Source of the DNA: Oopsacas minuta
Lineage: Eukaryota > Animalia > Porifera
NCBI GenBank assembly: GCA_024704765.1
Contig: JAKMXF010000210.1
Coordinates: 434,001-498,000 of the forward strand
Reading direction: 5' to 3'
Length of the DNA stretch: 64,000 nucleotides
Shown: positions 13,546-28,462 of the stretch, piece by piece
How positions within the stretch are numbered: position 1 is the stretch's first letter
How the letters are laid out: every line of letters starts with the position of its first letter
Program-made: the position numbers and the translations under genes
The notes under the pieces: generated by a model
The model's input: only the letters and a program-made list of their open reading frames with translations
What the model was told of the DNA's origin: nothing
Database searches by the model: none

Positions 13546-16500
13546 ATGGCATCAAAATCTAATGATATTCAGAATTTATTGGAAGAGACTGGACTTTTGA
13601 AAGTAAAAGAAAAGTTATCAGACCTCGGTATTGAAGAGCTGACTGATATGCAATACTTACAGCAAGAAGACTGGGATTCTCTAGGCTTAACTAAAATAGA
13701 ACTCAACAAACTTAAATTTCATCTGAATAAGGAGGATAACCCAGAACCTCCTGTCACTGATTCTGAAATATCAGTTGTGCCTAAGCTAGCCTCTGGTGAG
13801 GGTTTAATCTATTATATAATATATAGCACATTGATACCAAAACAAGGTCAAGTTAAGCTGAATTTGGATGAGACATCATTCGACGGCCTCGTGTCAGCTA
13901 TTTCAGCACAAGAACAGCTCCCTGATGGTGTGACTGTTGAGCTATATGCTCCACAAGGGTATCCCCTCGCGCCCGATTCATTTGCTTATGGAAAAACACT
14001 TCGCTACTGGCAGATAGACAATGGTTCTCTCGTTCTAGCTATCCCAAGGAAGAATCTAATGATGTCTGAATCTGGACTCCCGGGACTTGACCCGACAGAA
14101 GGTGCCTCTCAGATTTTCGTGAAACACAACAAGACTAGTGTTATTCGAGTTGATATCACTAAAGATAATGGAAAGACTCTTCGACAGAAAATCTCTAAAA
14201 AATTGGATATTCCTACCCCATGTATTAAGCTCAGCTATGGAGGTACATTAGTTCGTTCTAGCGATGCTAAACTATCTTCTTATAATATACAGGAAAACAG
14301 TACCATACAGATGTGGACATACGGTGTATCATGGGCAACCTCATGGAGAAATAACTTCACCAACAAATCATGTCTTCCTCTTTTCGAGCAGTCAGAAGAT
14401 TCTTTGACTTGTTTCAACTCTGCTCTCTACTGTGCGGCAATGAAGATGTGTAAGGCCAAGCAAGAAGACATTGAGAAAGTTCTAGGTCACATTAGACGCT
14501 TGGTTAGGTGCCCTCCTCTCATTGATTCGCTAAACAAACTGTTCAAAAACGAAGGTCTTCTATTCTCACATAAAGTTGCTATCCAAGAAATTCTCTACCA
14601 TCTCTTCAAACAGCTGTTAACCTCTACTAATGGATTACCTACTGATGTGTCTATAGATGATAAAGAGATACTTACCAGCTCTCCTACTCTATTCGCTTAT
14701 CTCATTTCTGAAGCTAAGAGCACAGATAAAGAAACTGAAAACTTTAAAGAATTTGATTTACTCTGCTCACTCTCTAATCTCCGTGTGGAGGACCCTGTTC
14801 TCATCCCTGGTTCTAGTCTACCATTTGACAGAGAATCTGTATTGGATAAGATTAGAGACGCAGAGCCAATTCCCAGTTGTGCTCTTGACGATTTGACTGA
14901 AGCAGACTTGCATCCAGACTTAGTACGAAAGAATCTACTATTATCATTCACATCTGATTCTGCTTACATCTGGCAGGGTAAGTGTACTAGTGATGACTTA
15001 GCAAAAGGTTATAGCAATCCAGTAGTGACATGTAGTTGGTCTGAACTCACAAACAAACGGAAAGCCCTTAAGTACTTGGAAGTATTGAAACCTCTTGAGT
15101 TAAAAACACACTCTAGCAATCCATATGTGCTCACTCTTAACTCAAACAAGACTGTTGTAGTATATGTAGAGAGAGAGGCCTGTGCTGCTACTAGTCGCGA
15201 TTACGTGTTATTTAATCCACAGCTGGGTTCCACTGAGAGTATTGATCCTGATGAATTAGCTAGAATCCTATACGGTACTGTCACTAAGGCTAAAACACAG
15301 TATACTGGAGGTGGTTATAAAGAAGAACAAATAGATTTATCAACAATACATCTACAAGATCCTGTGGTTACACGTAGGCCAGAGGAAGCTATCATTGTAC
15401 TTATTGATATCAGTGGATCAATGAATGGAAATTGGGACAGTGGAGTAACTCGTCTCGGCGCTGTTAAACAGTTGTTCCATGCCTTTGCGAACCGTACCAT
15501 GGCTTATAACCTATTTCATGTAGTTGGTCTTACTGTATTCGATTCCACTATTACATGTGTTTCAAAGGTAACTGAATTATTTGAAGAGTTTAAGGAGTAT
15601 GTAGATGCTCTATACACACGTGGTAGTACATCTCTCTATCAGGCTATTAATGATGGTATTACACAATTGATAGAATTCACTACTACACATCCTAGCGTTA
15701 TATCATCTGGTGGTAGTGGTATAGTTCCAGAGGGTGCTTCAAGAGGTGCTACTGGTTCCTCCGCTCCTAGCGAAGGTCTCTTTTCTAAATTGTTCCGATT
15801 AGGCAGCTCTGCATCCAAACAACCAGAGAAGACCCCAGCTGTTCCTGATACCACCGCTACTACTGATAGTAGTCCTAAGGTTCCTCCTATCAGGAGACGT
15901 ATAATTTGCCTAACTGATGGACATGATAATGCATCCAAGGTTCGTCCGCTTGAAGTTATTAATCGCTGTCTTAGAGAAGAAATTGTTGTAGACTCATTTG
16001 TAATAGGAGATGGTAATGACAATATGAAAGCTATCTCTCACGCTACAGGGGGGTGTAGCTTCCTACCCAATGAAATAGCTGCTGCTCTCAAGCTATTTGA
16101 GATGGAAGGAGTACTCAGTATGTCCCGTCGTGACGTCAAACCTGCCCGCGGGCCAATACAGGAACAGAAATTACAAGAATTTATGAGAGGAGATTACGAT
16201 AATGAGCCAGATACTCAAATGCCATTTGAAATGTGTAAAAAAGTTATTTCAGCAAAAGCTTATCTTGCCAAACAAGCTACAGCATCAGCTTCAAATATTG
16301 GTCGTGCTTCCAAACGTATAATGGCAGAACTTGCTAAAATCCAGAAAGATCCTCATGGAAGTATCGAGATCTATCCTTCAGAAGATGATATCTCTTTCTG
16401 GAGGCTTTTGGTCACGGGTCCTGAGTTCACAGCCTACGAGAACTGTGTGTTCCTTCTATATGTGAAGTTCCTCGAGGGTTACCCTATGTCTCCTCCAGAA

Positions 16501-17049
16501 GTGCGGTTTATTACACCTATTTATCACTGTAATATCAATCACAGTGGTCGCATATGTCATAGTGTATTCGGTCGTAATTATTCCAGTGATTTGTCTTTGC
16601 GTGAGATTTTGGACTGTATGTATGGATTACTATTAGAACCTGAGCCTAATGATCCACTTGATAGTAACATGGCTGAGCAGTACTTCTCAGAGAGAGAGAC
16701 GTATAATCAGAAAGCTAAGAAGATGGCACAACAACACGCTAGCAAGAGTATAGCTGATTGGAGGAAAGAATTGTTAGGTGCTGTTGTGACAGACTCTGAG
16801 ATTGGACAAGTTCCTAAAGAGCTGATATGTACACTTTGTGGAGAGATGTTCACTGATCCCGTCAAAACGCCTTATGGGGACACTTACGAACGGATGGCAA
16901 TCGAGAATCATCTTGATTCAGTTCAGACAGATCCCAAAACAGGACAACCTCTAAAGAAAGAACAGCTAATTGAAAATATTGAGATGAAAGAGAAAGTCAG
17001 GCTTCATCAGGAAGCTAACGTAGTTCCCAAAGGATGGTGGGATAAATAG
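13546..17049 (+). CDS. Multidomain E2/E3 fusion: SAM - UBL(s) - U-box-like - VWA - UBC - U-box
   Basis: Single 1167-aa ORF. VWA MIDAS IDISGSM; E2 core YPMSPPEVRFITPIYHCNINHSGRIC; C-terminal U-box VPKELICTLCGEMFTDPVKTPYGDTYER; ubiquitin-like IFVKHNKT...SYNIQENSTI; N-terminal SAM-like helix bundle. Confidence 0.85.
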   Translation: MASKSNDIQNLLEETGLLKVKEKLSDLGIEELTDMQYLQQEDWDSLGLTKIELNKLKFHLNKEDNPEPPVTDSEISVVPKLASGEGLIYYIIYSTLIPKQGQVKLNLDETSFDGLVSAISAQEQLPDGVTVELYAPQGYPLAPDSFAYGKTLRYWQIDNGSLVLAIPRKNLMMSESGLPGLDPTEGASQIFVKHNKTSVIRVDITKDNGKTLRQKISKKLDIPTPCIKLSYGGTLVRSSDAKLSSYNIQENSTIQMWTYGVSWATSWRNNFTNKSCLPLFEQSEDSLTCFNSALYCAAMKMCKAKQEDIEKVLGHIRRLVRCPPLIDSLNKLFKNEGLLFSHKVAIQEILYHLFKQLLTSTNGLPTDVSIDDKEILTSSPTLFAYLISEAKSTDKETENFKEFDLLCSLSNLRVEDPVLIPGSSLPFDRESVLDKIRDAEPIPSCALDDLTEADLHPDLVRKNLLLSFTSDSAYIWQGKCTSDDLAKGYSNPVVTCSWSELTNKRKALKYLEVLKPLELKTHSSNPYVLTLNSNKTVVVYVEREACAATSRDYVLFNPQLGSTESIDPDELARILYGTVTKAKTQYTGGGYKEEQIDLSTIHLQDPVVTRRPEEAIIVLIDISGSMNGNWDSGVTRLGAVKQLFHAFANRTMAYNLFHVVGLTVFDSTITCVSKVTELFEEFKEYVDALYTRGSTSLYQAINDGITQLIEFTTTHPSVISSGGSGIVPEGASRGATGSSAPSEGLFSKLFRLGSSASKQPEKTPAVPDTTATTDSSPKVPPIRRRIICLTDGHDNASKVRPLEVINRCLREEIVVDSFVIGDGNDNMKAISHATGGCSFLPNEIAAALKLFEMEGVLSMSRRDVKPARGPIQEQKLQEFMRGDYDNEPDTQMPFEMCKKVISAKAYLAKQATASASNIGRASKRIMAELAKIQKDPHGSIEIYPSEDDISFWRLLVTGPEFTAYENCVFLLYVKFLEGYPMSPPEVRFITPIYHCNINHSGRICHSVFGRNYSSDLSLREILDCMYGLLLEPEPNDPLDSNMAEQYFSERETYNQKAKKMAQQHASKSIADWRKELLGAVVTDSEIGQVPKELICTLCGEMFTDPVKTPYGDTYERMAIENHLDSVQTDPKTGQPLKKEQLIENIEMKEKVRLHQEANVVPKGWWDK

Positions 17050-17306
17050 AAATGTTATTCTTGCATGTTTTACTTTTAGTTTCCAAAGTTCATCGAATTA
17101 GTATTTTCCATTCCTTGTATTGAAAGATATTTACAGAGTGTGTACACATATTTACCAATTTCCTTCTATCTATTTCCATTTATTCGATTACCTAACTACA
17201 AACATTGTGTATCCTGTATTCTTTATTATGTAATAATATTGTTATGATTCAGCTCACAAAGGACTGAAGTTAGGAACTGTATCTCAAAATCAACAGTAAT
17301 TCCCTG

Positions 17307-20300
17307 ATGTATTTCAAAGTTATTTGTGCTACTCTGGTCTGCTCTACTATCGTCCTAATTGGTTTCCTAAGAGTTCATCGTAGGTCCTAATTCTAATTTG
17401 ATTTATTTTGATAAATACTTTTATGTGTGGTTAATTTGAATAGGTTGGAACTGGTTACGAATCAAAAGACCTAAAGAAGAGGCAATAGAAACTACACTAC
17501 CCATCTCTCGCACAAATACACCTCCCATAGACCAGACAGAAGAAGTGAAAGCTAAGCCGATGTTATGCCCTGGTCCCAGTACACAACATCTACAACATGA
17601 TGGAGTTGATGTGTATGTGATATCTAGCATGACAGAGTGCGAGGAAATACTCTCCAGTATTCCAAGACAGAATCTCTGTCTCTTAGGATTTGATTGTGAA
17701 TGGGCTCAGTCTTATCATTTAGATGAAATAGTACAAGCAGCACGAGGAGATTGTCTCTCAGCCTTCGTTTATCCTATAGCTTTAATTCAAATAGCAACTA
17801 TGGATTCTAGATGTTATCTTATCAGACTATCTCAGATGCAGAATCAAATTCCACCATCACTTGTGGACATCTTACTAGATGAAAAGTTAGGCAATGTGTT
17901 GAATAGATTGCTTACCCATAATTTAATTGTTGTTTTTATTTCTAGATGCCTTAAGTTTGGTGTCAGCTCTTTAAACGATTTGAATCGTATTAAGAATCAT
18001 TATCTCATACATCCAAAGGGTGCTGTCGATCTGAGACACCTTGCATACCACAGGATGATAGGGTAGGAATTAATTACATTTATTTGTACCAATAATAATT
18101 AATTAATTATGAATACAACAATTTGAGGAAAAACGGAAAAGTATACACTGGAATTTAACGATTGTCTACTTTGTAGTTTTTCCTGAATTTATCATCGAAA
18201 ATTCAAAAAAAGATTAGTAATTAATCATACTGTAATTAGATACATCTGTTGTTATCCATACTCTCTACAGAGCCCTATTATAGATTCAGTTTTATTATCT
18301 TTTGAGTATTTATTACTGAAATGAGAGCGATTATTTTCGTTATTTGTTTGTCTATTCTCGCGGCTAATTGCCAGAAGGTGGACATCCACATAGCTGGAAT
18401 CTATCCCGCAAATGGTAGTTGGTCTGCTCCTAATATTCCAATATCTGTACGCCTTGCTCTAGAACACATTAACTCAAACAATGTAGTACCTGGCTATACT
18501 CTTAGGATTGATCTTGAGAATAGTCAGTGTAAGAATACGATAGGATTAAGTAGATTATTTCATTTTATTCAGAACCCTAACTACACTTACGTATCTCTGT
18601 TTGGGGATGGTTGTTCGGTAGTTACTGGAGCTGTAGCAGAGATTAGCTATCTATACGGTCTTGTTTCTGTTGCATTTGCTTCGACCTCTCCTTCTCTTGC
18701 GAACACAGAGCGATATCCAACGCTGATACGTAGCCGACCTTCTGAATCCAGCACTATTCCAGCTAGATTGCGATTTATTACAGAGAATGGATGGAAACGA
18801 ATTGCAATAATTAATCAACAGGAAGATCTGTTCGTCTCGACTAGTCATGAGCTTCAAAAACTTCTCAATATTGATAGTGTGCACTATCGTATCGAAATCA
18901 TTGATCCTAAGGGACCAAATCTTCTAGAACAGTTACAAGGAGCATTAGCTCTCATAGAGAAAGAAGGTTATCGTATTATAGTAGCAAACATGTATCAAAC
19001 TCTAGCTGTTCAGTTGTTATGCATTATGAAATCCTCTGGTTTGCAACCTCCATTAGTGACGTGGATATTTCCAGGTTGGTATACAGATAGCTGGTACGAT
19101 AGTCCTGTACAACTTTCCAACATTACTTGTACTCCAGAAGAGATCAAACGCTTGTCTAATGGGTCTCTAGCTTTCTATGCTGGTCCGAGGTTTGTAGATT
19201 TCAATGCTGAGAATAGCACTACAATTTCTGGCTACACTGCTGAACAGCTGTTTGCCGAATACAGCGAGAGAGTTGAGAAAGAATCGAACACTTCACCTAA
19301 CCCTACCTTCATAGAAACAGCTTATGCTTACGATTCTATGTGGATGATAGCTCAGGGTCTTAGTAAGATTGCTTTAGCTTATGACCTTACTAAGCACCCG
19401 TCTGAATATGCTAATGATCTGTATAACAATATTACTTCTCTAAGTTTTATCGGATGGAGTGGAGAGATTTCTTTTGTTGGACATCAGCGAGTGGAACGCA
19501 GAGTTCAGCTTCTGGAATTTGTGAATGGAAAACTTGAGTATCGCGGCCTGTTCGATAATGTTCCTGTTCACGAATCTGATTACATACAAACTGATGATAT
19601 AACTTATAATGAAATTTATCCTTTCACTGTATGGAGTCCTGATAAAGCATCTGATGGAATTGAGATTCACTTTGTAGATATTTGGATTGTTGTTGTTGTC
19701 TTTATCTCTGCAGTCATGTCCTCAATATATGTTAGTATTGTGATTATTGTGATACTGGTTGGTATTGCTAAAAAGCTGAAGGCTGTAACCACCTCACAAC
19801 CATGGATAACAATCTTGATAACTTCTGGCAACTATTTTGTGTTCATTTTGGCAATTGTCTTTGTGATAGATGGTCGTATCTTAGGAATAGGTAGCAAAAA
19901 GAATGAACAAGCTTGCTACTTCATCTGTCATTTGAGAATCTGGCTAGGAAGTGTGTGGGTGAGTACAACTTTTGGAGGGATACTTGTAAAATCTCTCCGA
20001 TATTATATAATTGCGATAAAAAATAGGTTTGAGTATCGACGGGAATTAAGCACGAAATACATACTTATCTTCCCTCTACTACTCGTTGGTATAGATACGA
20101 TTTTCGTGTTAATCCTAAGATTAGTGCAGCCTGTCACGTTTATGGAAAGCGAAGTCTCTTCTGGTAAAATAAACCCACCTATCTATCAGATAAGTGAGTG
20201 TGGTATCGAAATGGGAAATAGCTATATCGTAATTTTGATAATTCTCGTACTGTTTAAGGTATTGTTGATGTTACTTAGCATATTAATGGCTTACAACATT

Positions 20301-23300
20301 AGGAATATTGTGAATAAGAATCAACGCTTTTCTGCCATAGTTTCATGGGTTACATATAACGGAACTGTATTTGTGATAACTGTAAGTCTAATTTATTCAT
20401 TCGTTTCTGATGTCAACATTAAGTATCCTCTATGTGCTATCGCTATTCTTGTTGGGGGGTTAATTACTGCTTCTATCATTTCTGCTCCCACGCTCCACTA
20501 CATGAGGGTTGATCCGAATTACATCGAGGGTGCGCACACTGGGGCTACGGACGCGTTTCCCGAAGATATTCAGATATTGCGTAAGAGGATTGAAGCTCTT
20601 GAGAGAGACAAGAATAATCTGGAGCACAGACTAGTGAAGAGGCTCAGTAGATCTATTCCTAACGTTATTATGGAAGATGAAATGATGCGTTCAACTGAGC
20701 TAATCTTGCAAGATTCATCCTCAATCCATTAATTTTTGAATATTTAGCATTTTCTTATATATAATTATCCATTTTTTGATTTTTCTCCATTCATTGAGAG
20801 AAATAATTAATTTTCCTTTAATATTATTTACAATTTAATATTTTTCTTAGTCAACGACTTGGTTTACAAGGATTAAGCAAACATTTTCTTGGAATTGAAT
20901 TGAATAAAGATCCACAATTACAAAGAAGTAACTGGCAGTCTCAAAACCTTACATTTCAACAGGTAGAAACTTATATACTTGGGTAGTTTTCAAATAATTT
21001 AAGTTACTTTCTTATAGATAAAGTACGCTTCAATAGATGCTAAGGTATCTCTGGATATTCTCTTCGCTATCCTCCAAATAATCTGCAAAGAACGTTCCAT
21101 TCCACAAGCAGTACAATGTCCGAGTATATCCTCAGAATTTATCGATCTGGTATTTGATATATGCGGTCCTTTAATTGATATTCCTTTTGGCGGGGGAAGT
21201 AGCAAGACTCAACAGAGACAGCGCAATAATTCTGGTAGTATTCACTCTATTAGGAGCAGAAATAGAACTAGGAATAGAATTAAATTACCTTATAATACAA
21301 ATCAGAATTTTACCCCAAACTAAAATTAACGACATGATCACTTGCAATATTATTAATATCCAATCCTTACAGATTTAGCTTGCAATCTTTCTCGTATTTG
21401 GGCTTAAATTCAATTATTTCATAAAATACGTAGTTTTCCTATCGAGTACTAGCTTGTTAGAACAATGGCCACCTCTACCAGTGCGTTATTACCATTAGAA
21501 CTGATCGACAAATGTATTGGCTCTAAGATTCACATTCTTCTAAAGAATGATAAAGAAATAGTCGGCACACTGCTCGGATTCGATGATTTTGTCAATATGG
21601 TATTGGAAGACGTGACTGAGTATGAAATGACGCCAGAGGGCAGACGGATAACTATGTTAGAGCAAATCCTGCTTAATGGTAATAGTATTACCATGATGAT
21701 ACCTGGAGGGGAAGGACCTTCTGTTCAGAGCTAGATTTCCGTTATTTTCTATTAATAAACTACATAGCTTTTCCACAGAGATTCATATTTTTTGGGTCGA
21801 GTTTAATTTAGTAATTTCTAGGAATGAGGGCAAAATTGATTTAACTGTTGAGTCACTGTTAGTTCAATTGTGACTTCAAATGTCTGATATACCTGATGCA
21901 AATGTAACTGATCTGAACTCATTTCTACTTTCACCCTTGTTATACTCCTACCAGCTGAATGACAGTATGAAAAGACGTGTTATTAAACATTTTGAGAGTA
22001 TTGAACTTCCAAATGACAAAATTGGACAGTTCCGTCTAGAATGGGAAAAATTAGCAAATACTCATTATACAAACTTGAAATCAGAATTATTGTCTGAAAT
22101 AGCGCTGAGTAAACTTGAAAGTCTAGATCCAGAATTTAATCAAGAACTTGAAAAGTTTACACAAACTGAATCTGGAGACTCAAAAGTTTCCAGAATAGAA
22201 GAGACAATTAATGAATTATGTTACAAAAATGAATTTGAGCTCAAGTCTAAACTGTTGAGTTCTTTGAAAGTTTTGAATGAGAAGTTAACCGAAAAATGCG
22301 ACCAGATTGAAGAAAGAGTTCTTAAAGAGCAACAAGCAATATCTACTCTATATGAAACAGTAAAACAAAACATGAAATAACTGTCCTTATTATCTTAAAA
22401 CAATCTCTTATATTTACAAAAAGTTCCATAAATATTGGCTAGTGATTTGTTAACATTCAATATTTGCTATTTATCAATTTATATCTGGTTTAATCTATTA
22501 GGTGTAATCACTGCAGACTCGCCTAGGGTTAAGAATATAACCACTCCATATGTAACAAGGAAAAGAGCCCTGTATGAGAATTGCCGGCTCTTGGCACCAG
22601 ACAATGAGCTCCTCTCTTTAATAGATACAAGAAAGGCTAATTGGTATTTTGAGAGAGACTTGGCTGGTGAGTTACAACTACGATAGTTATTTTATTAATT
22701 TATTAATTTCACTATTTATAGAACTTGTCAGCGAGGAACCTTATGTAGTCAGGTTAAAGTTTGAACCAAAGACTCGTCCTGAGAAGGGAAATATAGATAA
22801 GCTATACTATCAAGCTGAAAAACAGAATATTTGTGTAGTTTGTGGGTCCAAAGATGGTAACGGAATCAGGAAGAAAATCGTTCCAGCTGAATACAGGAAG
22901 TGAGTTTAATAATTTGGCTAAATTTAAAGTATATTAAATTACTTAACGGAAGATATAGCTGGACAAATATTTTGTATTTCTCTCTCAACCTTGTTAGACC
23001 ATAGCTTCAGTATTTCTGCAGGGCCATACCGCCATAGATTTATCATGAATGCTGGCTCCAGGTTTTCAACTGCATGTACCCATCCTCTGGGTAGATACAG
23101 GACTTCTCCAGGGTTCAAGGTAACTTGGATTGGATTGGCCTTTAGGAGGAGTGGGAATTTTGTTTTATCGAGTTTTTCCAATGTCTCTAACGCACTGCTC
23201 CATTCTAACGAGCCCTTAGCACTGACCATATATAAGAAAGGATGGTCTTGGGGCGAGAACAATGTCCATCTTTTCCTTCCAATCATCTGATACACGAAGT

Positions 23301-26272
23301 TATCCTTCGAGTCAAAATGTCCTTGTGTGTATGTACCAGGCATTCCCATCCAAATAGATGGAGTTAGAAAACAAGACTCAGGATTTCCGTAGAAAGGAGG
23401 ATATCCTATTAGCTCTCCAAACTCCTCTGACGTGATCAATCCCTTCTTAGCAAAGTATACGAGTTTTTCCTCTTCTCGAGCCTCTCTTTTGTTTGTTGTT
23501 ATGTCTACAAAGTCTTTTATAGACATTCTAACACGATTAATAATCTTTTTTCCTGATTTGCTTATCTCGTCTTTGTATTCTCCTTGTCTAACGTCTCCAA
23601 ACAGCATATGTCCATATTTGGAAGAGATGTATTCCCAATGCCACTTGCTTAGTACTTCCTGACTAATCATATCTGTAAAGACTACAGGCAATCCAACAGG
23701 AGCTATGTAGCTATTGAAAAGATCCGAAGAGGGAGTTTTCATACGAGCAACTTGTCTTATTCTTGGTAGTAATGAGCTAGCTCTCTGTATAGTGTCTAAG
23801 GAGTCTATACTATTATCACTCCAGCCCTTCAACTGGCTTAGATCCATGTCTTTATAAAGTAATGGTGTTTCAGATTCACTCATCTCTTCGGTAGGCATCT
23901 GTGTGGTTGGCTCGAATTTGTTGATTTCCAGAGCGTATGGGAAAGGGGACATATAAAGGTAATTCAGAATACATAGTTGGATAAGTAGAGCCACAAAGAA
24001 GAATGAGAGAATTATTACTTTCCATGTGAACGAGTTCATTACTGAGGTTTTATTATATGAATAGTAGGAATGAAGTTTGTTTGCTTGTCAGTTTAGCATT
24101 TATGGAACATTATCAACAAGCAAACTCGGACTAATAATATATTAACACAACATCAAGTAGATTTATGTGTAAAATGATAATATTCAATAACTAATAAGAA
24201 TTGATAGAAAGAGAAATCAGGCCAGTAAACCTTTTCGAAGAGAAGCAAGGAATTGCAAGCCTGCCATAATAGAAAGCTAGACAGTCTCCTCTCTCCAGAT
24301 GTTCTAATCACAAGACAAGGCTCAGGGCTAGGACTGGTGTACAGATTCTCACTTATATCTTTCTCTGATATTCTTCTCGTCGGGTTAGCTAGATGTATCT
24401 GGTTGATTGAGTTAACAATCTCTTCTGTTGACAAATAAGCTACGCATATATTGAGTGTGAATGCGTTATTCCTCTTTGAATCGTTTTGCACTCTCTCTAC
24501 GATATCTTGCAAGTCTTGAGGAAGAGTTGATATCTTTCCTATTATTTTTATCCGAGCTCCTGTCCTGATGAGAGATTCTCTATGTGATAGCATCTGCTCG
24601 AACTTCTCTCTGGCCAATTGCATTAGACCGTCAACCTCATCTTGAGGCCTGTATGTGGAGAATACATTTACACATTTAACTTACATCCATACCAGAGATG
24701 GAACCGGTTAGCTTTTTCATGACCCGACCCGACCGGCCGCTCGACCGGTCGATGGGAACTTTGACTATACACTGCCTGGCCAAAAGTATTGGAACACCCT
24801 GCCGCTTGTGATAGAGAAAAGACAATAGTGGATTTAGTAGTCAAGATTAAAATCTTCTATAAGATCTGTACTAAATTGTTTATTTATGGTCTAGTTTAAT
24901 CGAACTGCTAAGTTGAAGTTTTGGTCAATATGATTACAGTATCAAATTCAGATTTACCATATTCAGAAATTATGACCGGTACCCGACCCGACCCGACCGG
25001 TTCCATCTCTGATCTATACTACTGTTTAAATATCTACCTGTTAAAGTTTTCAAGACTGAAAGCATATACAGTTGCCTCCTTCACTCCCAGATCTCTGCAC
25101 CACCTTACCACATCGATCATCTTTTCAAATCCTGCTCTATGCCCTAGAGTGACGTCATCCAGCTTGTTCTTTCTCGCGAATCTCCTATTTCCATCCATAA
25201 TGATAGCGATATGATTCGGTATGCTTGTGCTAGGCAGGAGGTACCATAGTATGTACATGATGTACTTTTGGATTAGCTTTATAATCTTCCTGATGAACAC
25301 CCTCATGTTTATCCTGCAACCCTTTAAATTATTAGATGACCCGTTTCTGCCAACAAAATTATATCCATTTGGTTAGTCAACAACAACAGTTATTAATAAC
25401 TATTACATCTATTGTGTGTGCTATATCAAGTATCTATTTGCACCAATCTAATTATTCCACATAATTATGTAGAATTGTAGTATCCATTACTTTTAACCTC
25501 TCCCTTATATTGCATAGTAGGCTTATTTACTTTATTATAAGTTGCATAAGTTCCTCCTTCCCGGACATAATATTAGCTAGATATCCTTCTCCTTTCTTCC
25601 TATATTTTTCAGTTATTTTATATTTATTAGACATTTTCCTATTGATCACAAGAGCTACAAATCTCATGACAACTTGTTGCTTTGTGGTTCTTGCCATCTG
25701 ATAACAAGCCTCAATGAAGATATATTAAAATTACGTATCTCTAAGGAGTATGATGCACCAATTGACTCAGGAGCTTCCAAACTTAACTCTGACCCAATTT
25801 TATACAAAGTAAAGAATGCTGCTAGGTATGTCTTAATACGTATTAGCTATTTATAATTACATGACTTTAATATGGATATTATTCCTCAGGGCATTGGCAC
25901 AATCTAAAAATCCACTACCTGACGAAAGGGCAATTCAGTACAGAGAGATTCTTAAAGATTTCTACCAGGTAGAGGAATTGGATGAAGAGCAAATTCGAGA
26001 AGCTGCTAAGATCGATCCAAAGTAAGTTAATTCTGTAATTAGCTATTCAGGAATTTTGTTCTAGATTAATTGTATTATAAAATTTGTGAAGGAATGAGAA
26101 TCCAAATTACCATGGTCATGGAGAAAAGGTAGTCGAACAAGTGATGGCTAATGGAGAGTTACTTGAATTCCAGATGCGATGGAGACAACATTTTCTTGAG
26201 ACTATGAAACCAAAATTCTTACCAGAGCTTTGGTCAGCAACTCATAACCCTAATAAAGATAAATATTTCTAG
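17307..26272 (+). CDS. EXD2: EXD2 3'-5' exonuclease, 10 exons, hosting five nested genes
   Basis: Exons 17307..17379, 17444..17885, 17946..18062, 20851..20962, 21018..21234, 22502..22666, 22722..22899, 25631..25825, 25890..26021, 26092..26272 total 1812 nt (603 aa), all GT-AG with matching phases. N-terminal TM anchor, LGFDCEW, SNW...[34 protein letters not shown] and [16 protein letters not shown] are colinear with EXD2. The exon 5 donor could alternatively be an in-phase GT near 21199. Confidence 0.92.
18321..20732 (+). CDS. Class C GPCR, GABA-B receptor-like (nested in EXD2 intron 3, same strand)
   Basis: Signal peptide, Venus-flytrap domain ([36 protein letters not shown]), 7TM region and C-terminal coiled coil; single exon of 803 aa. 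Confidence 0.9.
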   Translation: MRAIIFVICLSILAANCQKVDIHIAGIYPANGSWSAPNIPISVRLALEHINSNNVVPGYTLRIDLENSQCKNTIGLSRLFHFIQNPNYTYVSLFGDGCSVVTGAVAEISYLYGLVSVAFASTSPSLANTERYPTLIRSRPSESSTIPARLRFITENGWKRIAIINQQEDLFVSTSHELQKLLNIDSVHYRIEIIDPKGPNLLEQLQGALALIEKEGYRIIVANMYQTLAVQLLCIMKSSGLQPPLVTWIFPGWYTDSWYDSPVQLSNITCTPEEIKRLSNGSLAFYAGPRFVDFNAENSTTISGYTAEQLFAEYSERVEKESNTSPNPTFIETAYAYDSMWMIAQGLSKIALAYDLTKHPSEYANDLYNNITSLSFIGWSGEISFVGHQRVERRVQLLEFVNGKLEYRGLFDNVPVHESDYIQTDDITYNEIYPFTVWSPDKASDGIEIHFVDIWIVVVVFISAVMSSIYVSIVIIVILVGIAKKLKAVTTSQPWITILITSGNYFVFILAIVFVIDGRILGIGSKKNEQACYFICHLRIWLGSVWVSTTFGGILVKSLRYYIIAIKNRFEYRRELSTKYILIFPLLLVGIDTIFVLILRLVQPVTFMESEVSSGKINPPIYQISECGIEMGNSYIVILIILVLFKVLLMLLSILMAYNIRNIVNKNQRFSAIVSWVTYNGTVFVITVSLIYSFVSDVNIKYPLCAIAILVGGLITASIISAPTLHYMRVDPNYIEGAHTGATDAFPEDIQILRKRIEALERDKNNLEHRLVKRLSRSIPNVIMEDEMMRSTELILQDSSSIH
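21465..21734 (+). CDS. LSM5: U6 snRNA-associated Sm-like protein LSm5 (nested in EXD2 intron 5, same strand)
   Basis: [47 protein letters not shown]...[18 protein letters not shown]. Confidence 0.97.
21880..22380 (+). CDS. Uncharacterised 166-aa coiled-coil protein (nested in EXD2 intron 5)
   Basis: ATG-initiated ORF with E/K/L-rich heptads; no family recognised with confidence. Confidence 0.6.
   Translation: MSDIPDANVTDLNSFLLSPLLYSYQLNDSMKRRVIKHFESIELPNDKIGQFRLEWEKLANTHYTNLKSELLSEIALSKLESLDPEFNQELEKFTQTESGDSKVSRIEETINELCYKNEFELKSKLLSSLKVLNEKLTEKCDQIEERVLKEQQAISTLYETVKQNMK
22939..24039 (-). CDS. JmjC/cupin-8 2-oxoglutarate oxygenase with N-terminal membrane anchor (nested antisense in EXD2 intron 7)
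   Basis: Metal-binding triad GHFDSKDN ... WVHAVEN; [10 protein letters not shown]; [13 protein letters not shown]; hydrophobic N-terminus. Confidence 0.88.
   Translation of the reverse strand: MNSFTWKVIILSFFFVALLIQLCILNYLYMSPFPYALEINKFEPTTQMPTEEMSESETPLLYKDMDLSQLKGWSDNSIDSLDTIQRASSLLPRIRQVARMKTPSSDLFNSYIAPVGLPVVFTDMISQEVLSKWHWEYISSKYGHMLFGDVRQGEYKDEISKSGKKIINRVRMSIKDFVDITTNKREAREEEKLVYFAKKGLITSEEFGELIGYPPFYGNPESCFLTPSIWMGMPGTYTQGHFDSKDNFVYQMIGRKRWTLFSPQDHPFLYMVSAKGSLEWSSALETLEKLDKTKFPLLLKANPIQVTLNPGEVLYLPRGWVHAVENLEPAFMINLWRYGPAEILKLWSNKVEREIQNICPAISSVK
24153..25306 (-). CDS. DHDDS: Dehydrodolichyl diphosphate synthase (cis-prenyltransferase), 2 exons (nested antisense in EXD2 intron 7)
   Basis: Exons 25306..25038 and 24648..24153 (phase 2, 254 aa). 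[48 protein letters not shown]. Confidence 0.93.
24693..25011. mobile_element. hAT-type MITE in the DHDDS intron
   Basis: Perfect 16-bp TIR CAGAGATGGAACCGGT / ACCGGTTCCATCTCTG; 8-bp TSD ATCCATAC / ATCTATAC (7 of 8 match); subterminal GACCC repeats. Confidence 0.88.
24768..24803. mobile_element. Tc1/mariner-like terminal fragment inserted inside the hAT MITE
   Basis: TA+CACTGCCTGGCCAAAAGTATTGGAACACCCTGC matches the reverse complement of 58430..58464 with 3 mismatches; no second TIR nearby. Confidence 0.7.
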
Positions 26273-26318
26273 CATGAGACTTTATTGGTGAAATTTTCAT
26301 TTTGACTTATATACAGTG

Positions 26319-26790
26319 CAGGGTTCTATCTAGAATGTTAAATTTGGGGAGGAAGCTTTTGAAAATCTTAATGTTATGAATTATCAAAATACTGCAGAAC
26401 CATTAAATATCGAACTTTAAAATTATTTCTTAATCGTGAAGGTTTAGCGAAACATAATAATTCTCACAAACTGATTTTGCTAGTTGTTTAGGAAAGCATT
26501 GAGTGGAAACTTTTGCATCGTTCTCTGGTGGTTGTGGTTCAGACTCAGATTCATTGTTGGAATCAGAAAACTAATTTATCCATGTTGTAACACGAGGGTG
26601 ATCACTTATTACGTATGAGGAGTTAACAAGAAGAATATACATATATCCTATGGCTGTAGAGTAGCCACAGGATATATGTATATATAATTAGAATATTTGA
26701 AATTGTGATTTATATTGCAGTATAGGAAACCTTTGGTTGGGAAACTGAAGTATTTGGTGGAGAAGCTTCCCACCAGTAGATAGAACCCTG
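26319..26790. mobile_element. hAT-like MITE downstream of EXD2
   Basis: Perfect 14-bp TIR CAGGGTTCTATCTA / TAGATAGAACCCTG; decayed 8-bp flanks ATACAGTG / ATACGGAT (5 of 8 match). Confidence 0.72.
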
Positions 26791-26971
26791 ATACGGATTT
26801 ATATCAATACCATATCTGCAATCATAAGGCCATAAATCCTAATTTCTATGTATGCTCCTAATTATTCCAATTCTACGTTAATTAGGGATATTTTATTACC
26901 AATAAACCTATATATTGTGTATAATTTATTTTTTCTTCCGATTTAATTAGCATATATTAGTTTACATAGAA

Positions 26972-28462
26972 ATGATTACAAATGGTATTAACAGTGGAAA
27001 TGAAGATTATGATGAGACCATACACCTCTTCTCAGGATCACTTGATCCTAAATTCGTGGCTAGAAGAAAAGAAAAACTTATCCCTAGCTTGTTGGTGAGC
27101 TTAGTTTTGAGTCTACACGGTCTTGTTTCTGGCTATGCATTAGGCTATACTGCACCAGTAGAAACCAGCATAGTGCATAGTGAAACAAATCCTGATGGTA
27201 TAATGACAATGCCTATTTTCACCATATTCTCATCATTTTTTAACATCGGCGCTGCTGTTGGAGCATTGTCTACTGTATTTTTAAGTGATCTAATCGGACG
27301 TAAAGACACACTGATCATTAGTCTGGGCACTTGGAGTTTAGGCTTTTTAATGCTTGGGGTGTATCCCAATCAATGGTTGCTGATAGCAGGCCGTATTATT
27401 ACTGGAGTAGCATTAGGGATGTCTACTTCTGTAGCACCTATGTACATGGGAGAAATAGCTACTGCTAAATACAGAGGTATGCTTGGTACTCTATTCCAGC
27501 TCATGATTACTATTGGTATTTTGTTAGCATACGTAGTGGGTACTCCCTTTGCAAAAGTATCATATGGATATCTATGGGTTGGACAGGTAGGCTTGGGAAT
27601 TTCTCTTGTATCATTGGTATTGCTTGTGTTCCAACACAGGTCTCCTGTTTGGCTTGTGTATAAAGGTCGCGAGGAGGAGGCGATGTTAGCCCTTCGGGTT
27701 TTGAGGGGAAAAACCGCATCGATTCAAAATGACATGAGTAATGCTGCAAATCTTGCAGCCTCAAAAACAGAGAAGTACGACTATTCAATTATCTTTACAA
27801 AGCCTATATTCATGCCATTCCTACTTAGTGCAATGTTAATGGCATTCCAACAGTTATCAGGAATAAATGCAGTTATTTTCTACTCTACTGACATTCTAAA
27901 GGAAGCTGTCCCTGAAGTGCAACCTGAACTCATCCCATTACCTCCCGCGTTGGTGCAGGTGATCGTAACATTTGCAGCTTCCTTCTTTGTGGATCGTCTC
28001 GGTCGAAAGATCATGTTGTTGATCGCTAGTTTTGGAATGTGTGCCAGCTCAATTACGATTGGTACTTATTTCATACTTGTAGATAAGGTGTATACAAACT
28101 GTACTTCCGTTCACACTAACAATGATATTGCATGTCATGTTTTAAGTCCGATAGTAGTGATAGCTGTTTGTTGTTTCTTGGGGTTTTTCTCAGTGGCGTG
28201 GGGACCAATTCCCTGGGTATTCGCTTCTGAAATTCTCAATGTCAAACTCAAGAATGTGACGATCGCAATAGTTACTTTATGCTCATGGATGTCAAGTTTT
28301 GTTGTAACTATGGGGTTCCCTCCTTTTGTTAATCTTGTACATGAATACGGAGGCTTCTATACATTTGCTGCTATCAATATTATAGGGATCATTTTTATAT
28401 TATTCTTCCTGAAAGAAACAAAAGGTAAAACACTTGAGCAACTACAAAATCTTTACTCTTGA
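26972..28462 (+). CDS. SLC2A8: Facilitated sugar transporter, GLUT8/class III-like (MFS)
   Basis: 12 TM segments; DLIGRK, APMYMGEIATAKYRGMLG, QQLSGINAVIFY, DRLGRK, GPIPW, KETKGKTLEQ. Confidence 0.85.
   Translation: MITNGINSGNEDYDETIHLFSGSLDPKFVARRKEKLIPSLLVSLVLSLHGLVSGYALGYTAPVETSIVHSETNPDGIMTMPIFTIFSSFFNIGAAVGALSTVFLSDLIGRKDTLIISLGTWSLGFLMLGVYPNQWLLIAGRIITGVALGMSTSVAPMYMGEIATAKYRGMLGTLFQLMITIGILLAYVVGTPFAKVSYGYLWVGQVGLGISLVSLVLLVFQHRSPVWLVYKGREEEAMLALRVLRGKTASIQNDMSNAANLAASKTEKYDYSIIFTKPIFMPFLLSAMLMAFQQLSGINAVIFYSTDILKEAVPEVQPELIPLPPALVQVIVTFAASFFVDRLGRKIMLLIASFGMCASSITIGTYFILVDKVYTNCTSVHTNNDIACHVLSPIVVIAVCCFLGFFSVAWGPIPWVFASEILNVKLKNVTIAIVTLCSWMSSFVVTMGFPPFVNLVHEYGGFYTFAAINIIGIIFILFFLKETKGKTLEQLQNLYS

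Follow-up and report, generated by a model that had tools for sequence, protein, structure and literature searches.

A ten-exon EXD2 gene that very probably hosts five genes in three introns of the glass sponge Oopsacas minuta

How should a coding sequence be read when it lies in pieces over 9 kb and the open reading frames (ORFs) of other genes stand between its parts? The question arises at a locus of Oopsacas minuta within a stretch of 64,000 nucleotides (assembly GCA_024704765.1, contig JAKMXF010000210.1, positions 434,001 to 498,000), which we call the window and to which all positions refer. When the forward strand between 17.3 and 26.3 kb is translated in three frames, a single protein resembling the exonuclease EXD2 appears in pieces with other ORFs between them. 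Our analysis indicates that these pieces very probably form one functional EXD2 gene of ten exons over 8,966 bp, with five independent genes placed in three of its introns.

Joining the pieces at GT..AG sites gives a forward-strand model from 17307 to 26272 (Table 1) with a coding length of 1812 nt, i.e., 603 codons and a stop, and no internal stop codons. The nine introns measure 64, 60, 2788, 55, 1267, 55, 2731, 64 and 70 nt, and all nine have GT-AG borders. Residues 81-603 of the encoded protein align in one BLASTP segment with residues 57-593 of a 594-aa protein from Ostrea edulis (37% identity, E 2e-114), which is named exonuclease 3'-5' domain-containing protein 2-like and whose relatives are EXD2 proteins across molluscs and vertebrates. 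Four further full-length EXD2 proteins align similarly with the model in BLASTP, and from residue 81 through its final residue the protein is colinear with animal EXD2, at 34-38% identity. With the sequence of exons 2-3 as query, the exonuclease domain of human EXD2 was the only match in the PDB. The ExoI DxE (FDCEW), ExoIII YxxxD (YASIDA) and CxxC motifs can be read in the model, and a C-terminal Cys/His (HNH-like) region (CVVCG ...) and a conserved tail align with shark and oyster EXD2. Like other animal EXD2 proteins, the model has an N-terminal hydrophobic anchor, a DEDDy-type exonuclease domain, a C-terminal Cys/His region and the conserved tail, whereas its exonuclease domain differs from theirs by a 15-residue insertion after the DxE motif. 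Judged by these alignments, the host is EXD2 with a DEDDy-type exonuclease domain, and both its activity and its membrane anchoring are predicted.

The exonuclease domain is also informative about how the pieces belong together. The family PF01612 was matched in two consecutive halves, one in exons 1-3 and one in exons 4-5 (profile positions in Table 1), which taken singly score 23.7 and 21.6 bits against a Pfam cutoff of 23.6. Since the halves flank EXD2 intron 3, the first long intron splits the catalytic domain. Exons 4-5 contain no Met, and the middle EXD2 piece therefore cannot be a gene of its own. An original prediction made from the letters of the window had described the ORF track as disconnected fragments and had proposed a 603-aa EXD2 in ten exons with GT-AG sites, six introns of 55-70 nt and three large ones. 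Our rebuilding from the sequence led to the identical model, with matching coordinates for the three long introns and lengths of 55-70 nt for the six short ones, and with EXD2 pieces separated by other ORFs in the translation, and the family name is now borne out by end-to-end alignment with named EXD2 proteins and by the PDB match to human EXD2.

The three long introns contain five guest genes. All five guest coding regions are complete and each lies between an EXD2 donor and an EXD2 acceptor. The guest spans occupy 87%, 61% and 83% of long introns 1, 2 and 3, and about 60% of the whole host, and stretches of 39-324 nt separate the guest ORFs from the splice sites, comparable with or below the ORF-to-ORF spacers of 244-377 nt found outside the host. 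The guest in intron 3 is a class-C G protein-coupled receptor (GPCR) in which an ANF_receptor ligand-binding domain is followed by 7tm_3, and its public name is GABA type B receptor. The first guest in intron 5 is LSM5, for which all seven PDB matches are LSm5 (human, 1.4e-44). It is followed by a 166-aa ORF without family matches in Pfam, Atlas or a PDB profile search. This ORF is predicted to be all-helical, and the pTM of its AlphaFold model (0.36) is too weak for a fold search.

The two guests in intron 7 lie on the opposite strand. One has Cupin_8/JmjC as its sole domain, and its nearest solved relatives are JMJD5, FIH and JMJD7. Its ORF has 366 codons where the public model has 319 aa, and the orthologous ORFs in the related sponges described below have 354-365 aa. 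In O. minuta 39 nt separate the EXD2 exon-7 donor from the start of the JmjC stop codon (22900 vs 22939), and in the relatives the distance is 21-49 nt. An antisense overlap of the JmjC 3' untranslated region with EXD2 exon 7 is almost certain. The other guest is DHDDS, which has two exons between 24153 and 25306 on the reverse strand, encodes 254 aa as does the public model, and matches PF01255 in both exons. The names first proposed for the guests (GABA-B-like GPCR, LSM5, coiled-coil ORF, JmjC gene and DHDDS) agree with the Pfam, PDB and public names, the coiled-coil ORF being the helical 166-aa ORF without a family. The distance of 39 nt from the JmjC stop to the EXD2 donor was likewise given correctly, and the description of the three large introns as nearly filled by genes corresponds to the occupancies measured here. 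A search of 16500-27000 for non-coding RNA genes gave no Rfam families and no tRNAs. Upstream of EXD2, at 13546-17049, lies an intronless ORF of 1167 aa with SAM-like, ubiquitin-like, VWA, E2 (UQ_con) and U-box domains, which is kept at the equivalent place in three relatives.

Table 1. Features of the EXD2 locus of O. minuta, with positions in the window.
Feature	Position	Strand	Evidence or remark
EXD2 exon 1: ATG, hydrophobic N-terminal anchor (predicted)	17307-17379	+	Start of public 211-aa model P0001; kept in L003 and L004
EXD2 exon 2: FDCEW motif; 3'-5' exonuclease domain begins	17444-17885	+	PF01612 positions 41-108 in exons 1-3
EXD2 exon 3	17946-18062	+	Public P0001 also uses introns 1 and 2, then enters long intron 1 and ends
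EXD2 intron 3 (long intron 1), 2788 nt	18063-20850	+	Donor AGG/GTAGGA, acceptor TTAG/T; homologues in L002-L004 2738-2867 nt
Guest 1: single-exon class-C GPCR, GABA-B-like, 803 aa	18321-20732	+	In intron 3; ANF_receptor 4e-41, 7tm_3 1.5e-15 (Pfam)
EXD2 exon 4: exonuclease domain continued	20851-20962	+	PF01612 positions 123-165 in exons 4-5
EXD2 exon 5: YASIDA ExoIII motif, start of linker	21018-21234	+	Donor context CTG/GTAGTA invariant in four species
EXD2 intron 5 (long intron 2), 1267 nt	21235-22501	+	Identical intron in public chimera P0166
Purine-rich block, AGAAAT/AGGAAT repeats	21246-21290	+	Starts 12 nt after intron-5 donor; nearly unchanged across the four species
Guest 2: LSM5, single exon, 89 aa	21465-21734	+	In intron 5; LSM domain PF01423 5e-20
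Guest 3: all-helical ORF, 166 aa	21880-22380	+	In intron 5; AlphaFold model all helix, pTM 0.36
EXD2 exon 6	22502-22666	+	Single difference to organism B synonymous
EXD2 exon 7: first CxxC of C-terminal zinc/HNH-like region	22722-22899	+	7/7 differences to organism B synonymous
EXD2 intron 7 (long intron 3), 2731 nt	22900-25630	+	Donor AAG/GTGAGT, acceptor TTAG/A, conserved in four species
Guest 4: JmjC-only (Cupin_8) hydroxylase of 366 aa in one exon, N-terminus hydrophobic	22939-24039	-	In intron 7; Cupin_8 8e-34
Guest 5: DHDDS exon 2	24153-24648	-	Prenyltransf 7e-39; human DHDDS 3e-31 (PDB)
Element like a miniature inverted-repeat transposable element (MITE), high-copy, in DHDDS intron	24693-25011	.	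16-nt perfect terminal inverted repeats; ~100-fold excess depth, contig breaks
Guest 5: DHDDS exon 1	25038-25306	-	Prenyltransf profile positions 1-54
EXD2 exon 8: second Cxx... stretch	25631-25825	+	Alignment to EXD2 proteins
EXD2 exon 9	25890-26021	+	Exon model
EXD2 exon 10: stop codon; RWRQHF... tail common to animal EXD2	26092-26272	+	Exon model, alignment

Further evidence for the single-gene reading comes from comparison with other glass sponges. Three contigs from metagenome-style assemblies in ENA (L002, L003 and L004) make up, together with O. minuta, a set of four species. Each of the three contigs has all ten EXD2 exons in order, and their GT-AG models of 598, 600 and 600 aa are 72-77% identical to the O. 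minuta protein over aligned residues, with introns at the identical nine positions. The same three introns are the long ones (2738-2867, 1234-1328 and 2249-2464 nt), and each of them harbours the guests found there in O. minuta, five in all and in unchanged orientation. The GPCR orthologues at the equivalent place are 72-75% identical, those of LSM5 have 91-97% identity to the O. minuta protein, and those of the 166-aa ORF have 166-168 aa. Synteny in related genomes had been proposed as a check with the original prediction; now that it has been run, the arrangement is seen to be conserved in three other glass-sponge assemblies. The ancestor shared by the four sampled glass sponges already had all five guests in place.

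The pattern of substitution points in the same direction. In comparisons of O. minuta with the three relatives, synonymous substitution has reached saturation (pS 0.65-0.78), and for the unsaturated pair L003-L004 the dN/dS ratio is 0.085 for EXD2 and 0.11-0.15 for the guests, with 0.15 for both the GPCR and the 166-aa ORF. By these ratios, the host and all guests are under strong purifying selection, and with ORFs that are intact in four species they count as functional genes. Additionally, a fourth and close relative (organism B), whose DNA is ~95-96% identical to that of O. minuta, has contigs that lead from EXD2 exons 6-7 into the 3' end of the JmjC gene and from the 5' end of DHDDS into exon 8. 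All eight differences between organism B and O. minuta in exons 6-7 are synonymous in the frame of the model.

Conservation also marks the exon borders. At long introns 1 and 3, four-species conservation stops at the donors and restarts at the acceptors, while at long intron 2 it restarts at the acceptor and continues past the donor into a purine-rich block, to which we return below. Directly after the intron-5 acceptor, the residues VITAD recur in L003, while L004 has VFTAD, and the intron-7 junction lies inside the conserved stretch ...VPAEYRK/HFP.... Conservation of the first 16 bases of intron 7, GTGAGTTTAATAATTT, extends over O. minuta, L003 and L004, and L002 differs at three of them.

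These data bear on the idea that insertions of other genes broke EXD2 up and left its exons as relics that no longer yield one protein. In favour of this idea, the sequencing runs described below, which behave as DNA, gave no transcript evidence. However, the ten exons are open, in frame and in phase in four species despite the saturation of synonymous sites, EXD2 has the low dN/dS of 0.085, and the 8/8 synonymous differences to the close relative leave the protein unchanged. The splice sites are conserved as well, and the catalytic DxE and YxxxD motifs and the CxxC motif are all present. We therefore consider a broken-up relic of EXD2 extremely improbable.

An interleaved order of genes could also result from an assembly that mixed separate loci. 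The high-copy repeat at 24693-25011 breaks short-read contigs, and an error at this place would be conceivable. We mapped four of the five sequencing runs returned for this stretch, whose contigs may derive from the sample that was used to assemble the window. All four behave as DNA, with a flat depth of ~90-200 and no splice joints. Contigs from these DNA runs cover 20301-24721 (one 6126-nt contig that reaches further upstream) and 24987-26300 without rearrangement, and 20301-26300 is contiguous apart from the repeat at 24722-24986. DHDDS bridges the contig break, since its exons flanking the repeat match successive parts of a single Pfam profile, and three assemblies of other species have the identical order. 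Misassembly had been named beforehand as one finding that would overturn the prediction; the DNA contigs, the colinearity of DHDDS and the order in the other species all speak against it, and we hold an artefact to be next to impossible. The excess depth of the repeat is seen in the DNA runs of both O. minuta and organism B. The two DHDDS ORFs lie less than 100 nt apart in L003 and L004, and the MITE-like insertion therefore looks lineage-specific.

The public gene table of the contig gives a different account, in which EXD2 is broken into three models. P0001 (211 aa) equals EXD2 exons 1-3 plus one intronic codon, and P0166 (18321-22903), named 'GABA type B receptor', has 1007 aa, of which 791-1007 are residues 219-435 of EXD2. 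The third piece is a 186-aa model over exons 8-10. If this annotation were right, the locus would encode an exonuclease fragment, a receptor-EXD2 fusion and a separate 186-aa gene, and there would be no single EXD2. These are the deposited models, and they were made by BRAKER1/Augustus with TopHat RNA-seq hints. However, the fusion requires a weak 182-nt intron (GTTCAA..TACAAG) that begins within the GPCR tail, skips the last 13 codons and the stop of the GPCR, and enters exon 4 at 20 bases past its conserved acceptor. The 211-aa model, in turn, ends by reading one codon into EXD2 intron 3, and the exonuclease domain would be severed between its motifs. In all three relatives, moreover, the GPCR is a stand-alone ORF of 800-809 aa. 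Nested-gene prediction is disabled in some gene-modelling programs, according to the description of the Aphrocallistes vastus genome (Francis et al., 2023; PMC10282587), and its authors see in this the likely cause of the low O. minuta count of 83 nested genes. We judge it highly improbable that the three public models describe the locus correctly.

Some introns are common to both accounts. P0166 uses intron 5 (21235-22501) and the short introns 4 and 6, and P0001 uses introns 1 and 2. The RNA-seq-guided prediction supports these shared introns, although this support is at best indirect. For LSM5 and the 166-aa ORF, the public O. minuta gene table has no entry at the locus, and no protein identical to the exact LSM5 sequence is on record.

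Several points weigh against reading the locus as one expressed EXD2 gene. The public annotation was guided by RNA-seq and has three pieces in place of an EXD2 model. A region search of a collection of 5.8 billion proteins with the EXD2 part of P0166 found no full-length sponge EXD2 (554-1762 aa). The four mapped runs yielded no splice joints, and the evidence for splicing across the three long introns is comparative. Furthermore, in the short, AT-rich spacers before the next EXD2 exon no decisive poly(A) signal of canonical type was seen for the same-strand guests; the passage of the host polymerase through these guests is therefore unexplained. A search of the same protein collection with oyster EXD2 returned, among the matches listed, only closer relatives of the oyster protein.

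The preferred reading of one EXD2 gene with five independent guests also covers the mode of expression. Ordinary GT-AG splicing would remove the three gene-bearing introns, and each guest would be its own transcription unit, with a promoter and a 3' end fitted into the spacers of 39-324 nt. In a compact genome, the only long introns of EXD2 would then be those that cannot shrink, because they contain genes. Conserved motifs upstream of three guests may be relevant here. A 12-mer containing TGTTCCATA (motif TGTTCCATAWAT) lies ~70 nt upstream of the JmjC ATG, within 24040-24152, in all four species, and none of 200 shuffles reaches this. A TTGAYTAACCAA-like motif is found ~70 nt upstream of the DHDDS ATG within 25307-25630, and TATCGAGTACTAGCTT is found 15-25 nt upstream of the LSM5 ATG, within 21440-21464, in three species. 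As these motifs are conserved despite saturated divergence, they are candidate core promoter elements and would support separate promoters. Looping-out of the guests by pairing of intron ends was tried as a further mechanism and rejected, as the duplex energies were not consistently better than those of shuffles (z -2.8 to +2.0).

Just past the donor of intron 5 lies the purine-rich block (21246-21290), which is near-invariant in the four species. It contains a 15-mer common to all four species, which none of 200 shuffles reaches, and its conservation exceeds that of the coding sequence ahead of it. The block is in frame with exon 5, with third codon positions no less conserved than the other two; a nucleotide-level element is therefore favoured over a coding tail. 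No later GT donor was found past the block in O. minuta. The block may thus be a splicing enhancer, a distal promoter element of LSM5 or part of an intron-retaining isoform. It was also considered as a general signal of long introns and rejected, being unique in the window.

A further explanation does not exclude the nested arrangement and would add to it. The same-strand guests might not be fully autonomous, and could mature from the EXD2 transcript, or compete with it, through internal polyadenylation, spliced-leader trans-splicing or both, while some EXD2 transcripts may stop within intron 5 and give a short isoform with the exonuclease alone. The distance from a same-strand guest stop to the next EXD2 acceptor is only 87-237 nt, a trans-spliced leader is reported for A. 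vastus (PMC10282587), and the near-invariant purine-rich block just past the intron-5 donor is in frame with exon 5. On the other hand, the leader occurs on only 4% of A. vastus long reads (PMC10282587), and the conserved motifs near the LSM5 start suggest a promoter of its own. The equal conservation of third codon positions speaks for a nucleotide-level element and not for a coding tail, and same-strand and opposite-strand nesting occur at similar frequency in mammals, where no special route is reported for the former (PMC11694760). We regard such an addition as unlikely. In a stronger form, the same-strand guests would depend on the host, and the EXD2 transcript would be either spliced across them or cleaved and polyadenylated (perhaps trans-spliced) at them to give guest mRNAs or the short exonuclease-only EXD2, with the purine-rich block as the switch; this we regard as decidedly unlikely.

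The ages of the host introns were addressed by comparison with the eight coding exons of elephant-shark EXD2, the one usable gene, as the oyster and scallop proteins have no gene on record and the amphioxus copy lacks introns. The short introns 4 and 6 of O. minuta are at positions identical to shark introns, intron 9 is within 1-2 residues of one, and long intron 1 is within ~5 aligned residues of one. Long introns 2 and 3, in contrast, have no shark counterpart within 10-25 residues. This single comparison gives no firm dates. We know of no guest genes in vertebrate EXD2. The EXD2-like protein P0122 (603 aa) of Branchiostoma lanceolatum is encoded by one uninterrupted exon (L005, 501-2312) and is possibly a retrocopy.

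Nested genes are a published hallmark of glass sponges. In A. vastus, 2432 nested genes make up 12.4% of genes, with conservation stated for many of them, whereas only 83 are found in the O. minuta annotation, and low counts in some annotations probably come from gene-modelling programs with nested prediction disabled (PMC10282587). Extensive microsynteny between A. vastus and O. minuta is described in the same paper. The EXD2 locus resembles these published cases in that complete, mostly single-exon genes lie in host introns of a compact hexactinellid genome, in an arrangement that is conserved between glass sponges and was missed by the automatic O. minuta annotation. The excerpted text of that paper does not describe the EXD2 locus, which is distinguished by five guests in three introns of a host of only 9 kb, about 60% of which is guest sequence.

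Classical hosts of several guests are human NF1 and Drosophila dunce. In mammals, guests lie wholly within host introns, preferentially the longest ones, on either strand and in about equal numbers of same and opposite orientations, and some hosts have several guests; the 95th percentile is 3-4 guests per host, with maxima of 77 and 186 (PMC11694760). O. minuta EXD2 is alike in these respects, but mammalian hosts are large genes with very long introns, whereas the EXD2 introns barely exceed their guests and leave flanks of 39-324 nt. The original prediction had called five guests in one host extreme. This was overstated, since nesting is characteristic of glass sponges (PMC10282587) and five guests is only just above the mammalian 95th percentile (PMC11694760). 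The locus belongs to a known kind of arrangement, of which it is a genuine, well-conserved and unusually dense case, and it does not represent a new kind.

What is new is the correction of the annotation at this locus. The public gene set contains a false 1007-aa fusion of a GABA-B receptor with EXD2, and at this locus it lacks LSM5, a core subunit of the spliceosome and of decay, as well as a conserved 166-aa gene. Key metazoan genes have been argued to be missing from the O. minuta genome (PMC10280926). Because intron-nested genes escape the O. minuta annotation, such calls of gene absence need rechecking on the DNA. The locus is also a compact and deeply conserved test case for how same-strand intronic genes are expressed alongside host transcription, with three same-strand and two opposite-strand guests in 9 kb. 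The main value of the finding is practical, and lies in the annotation of O. minuta.

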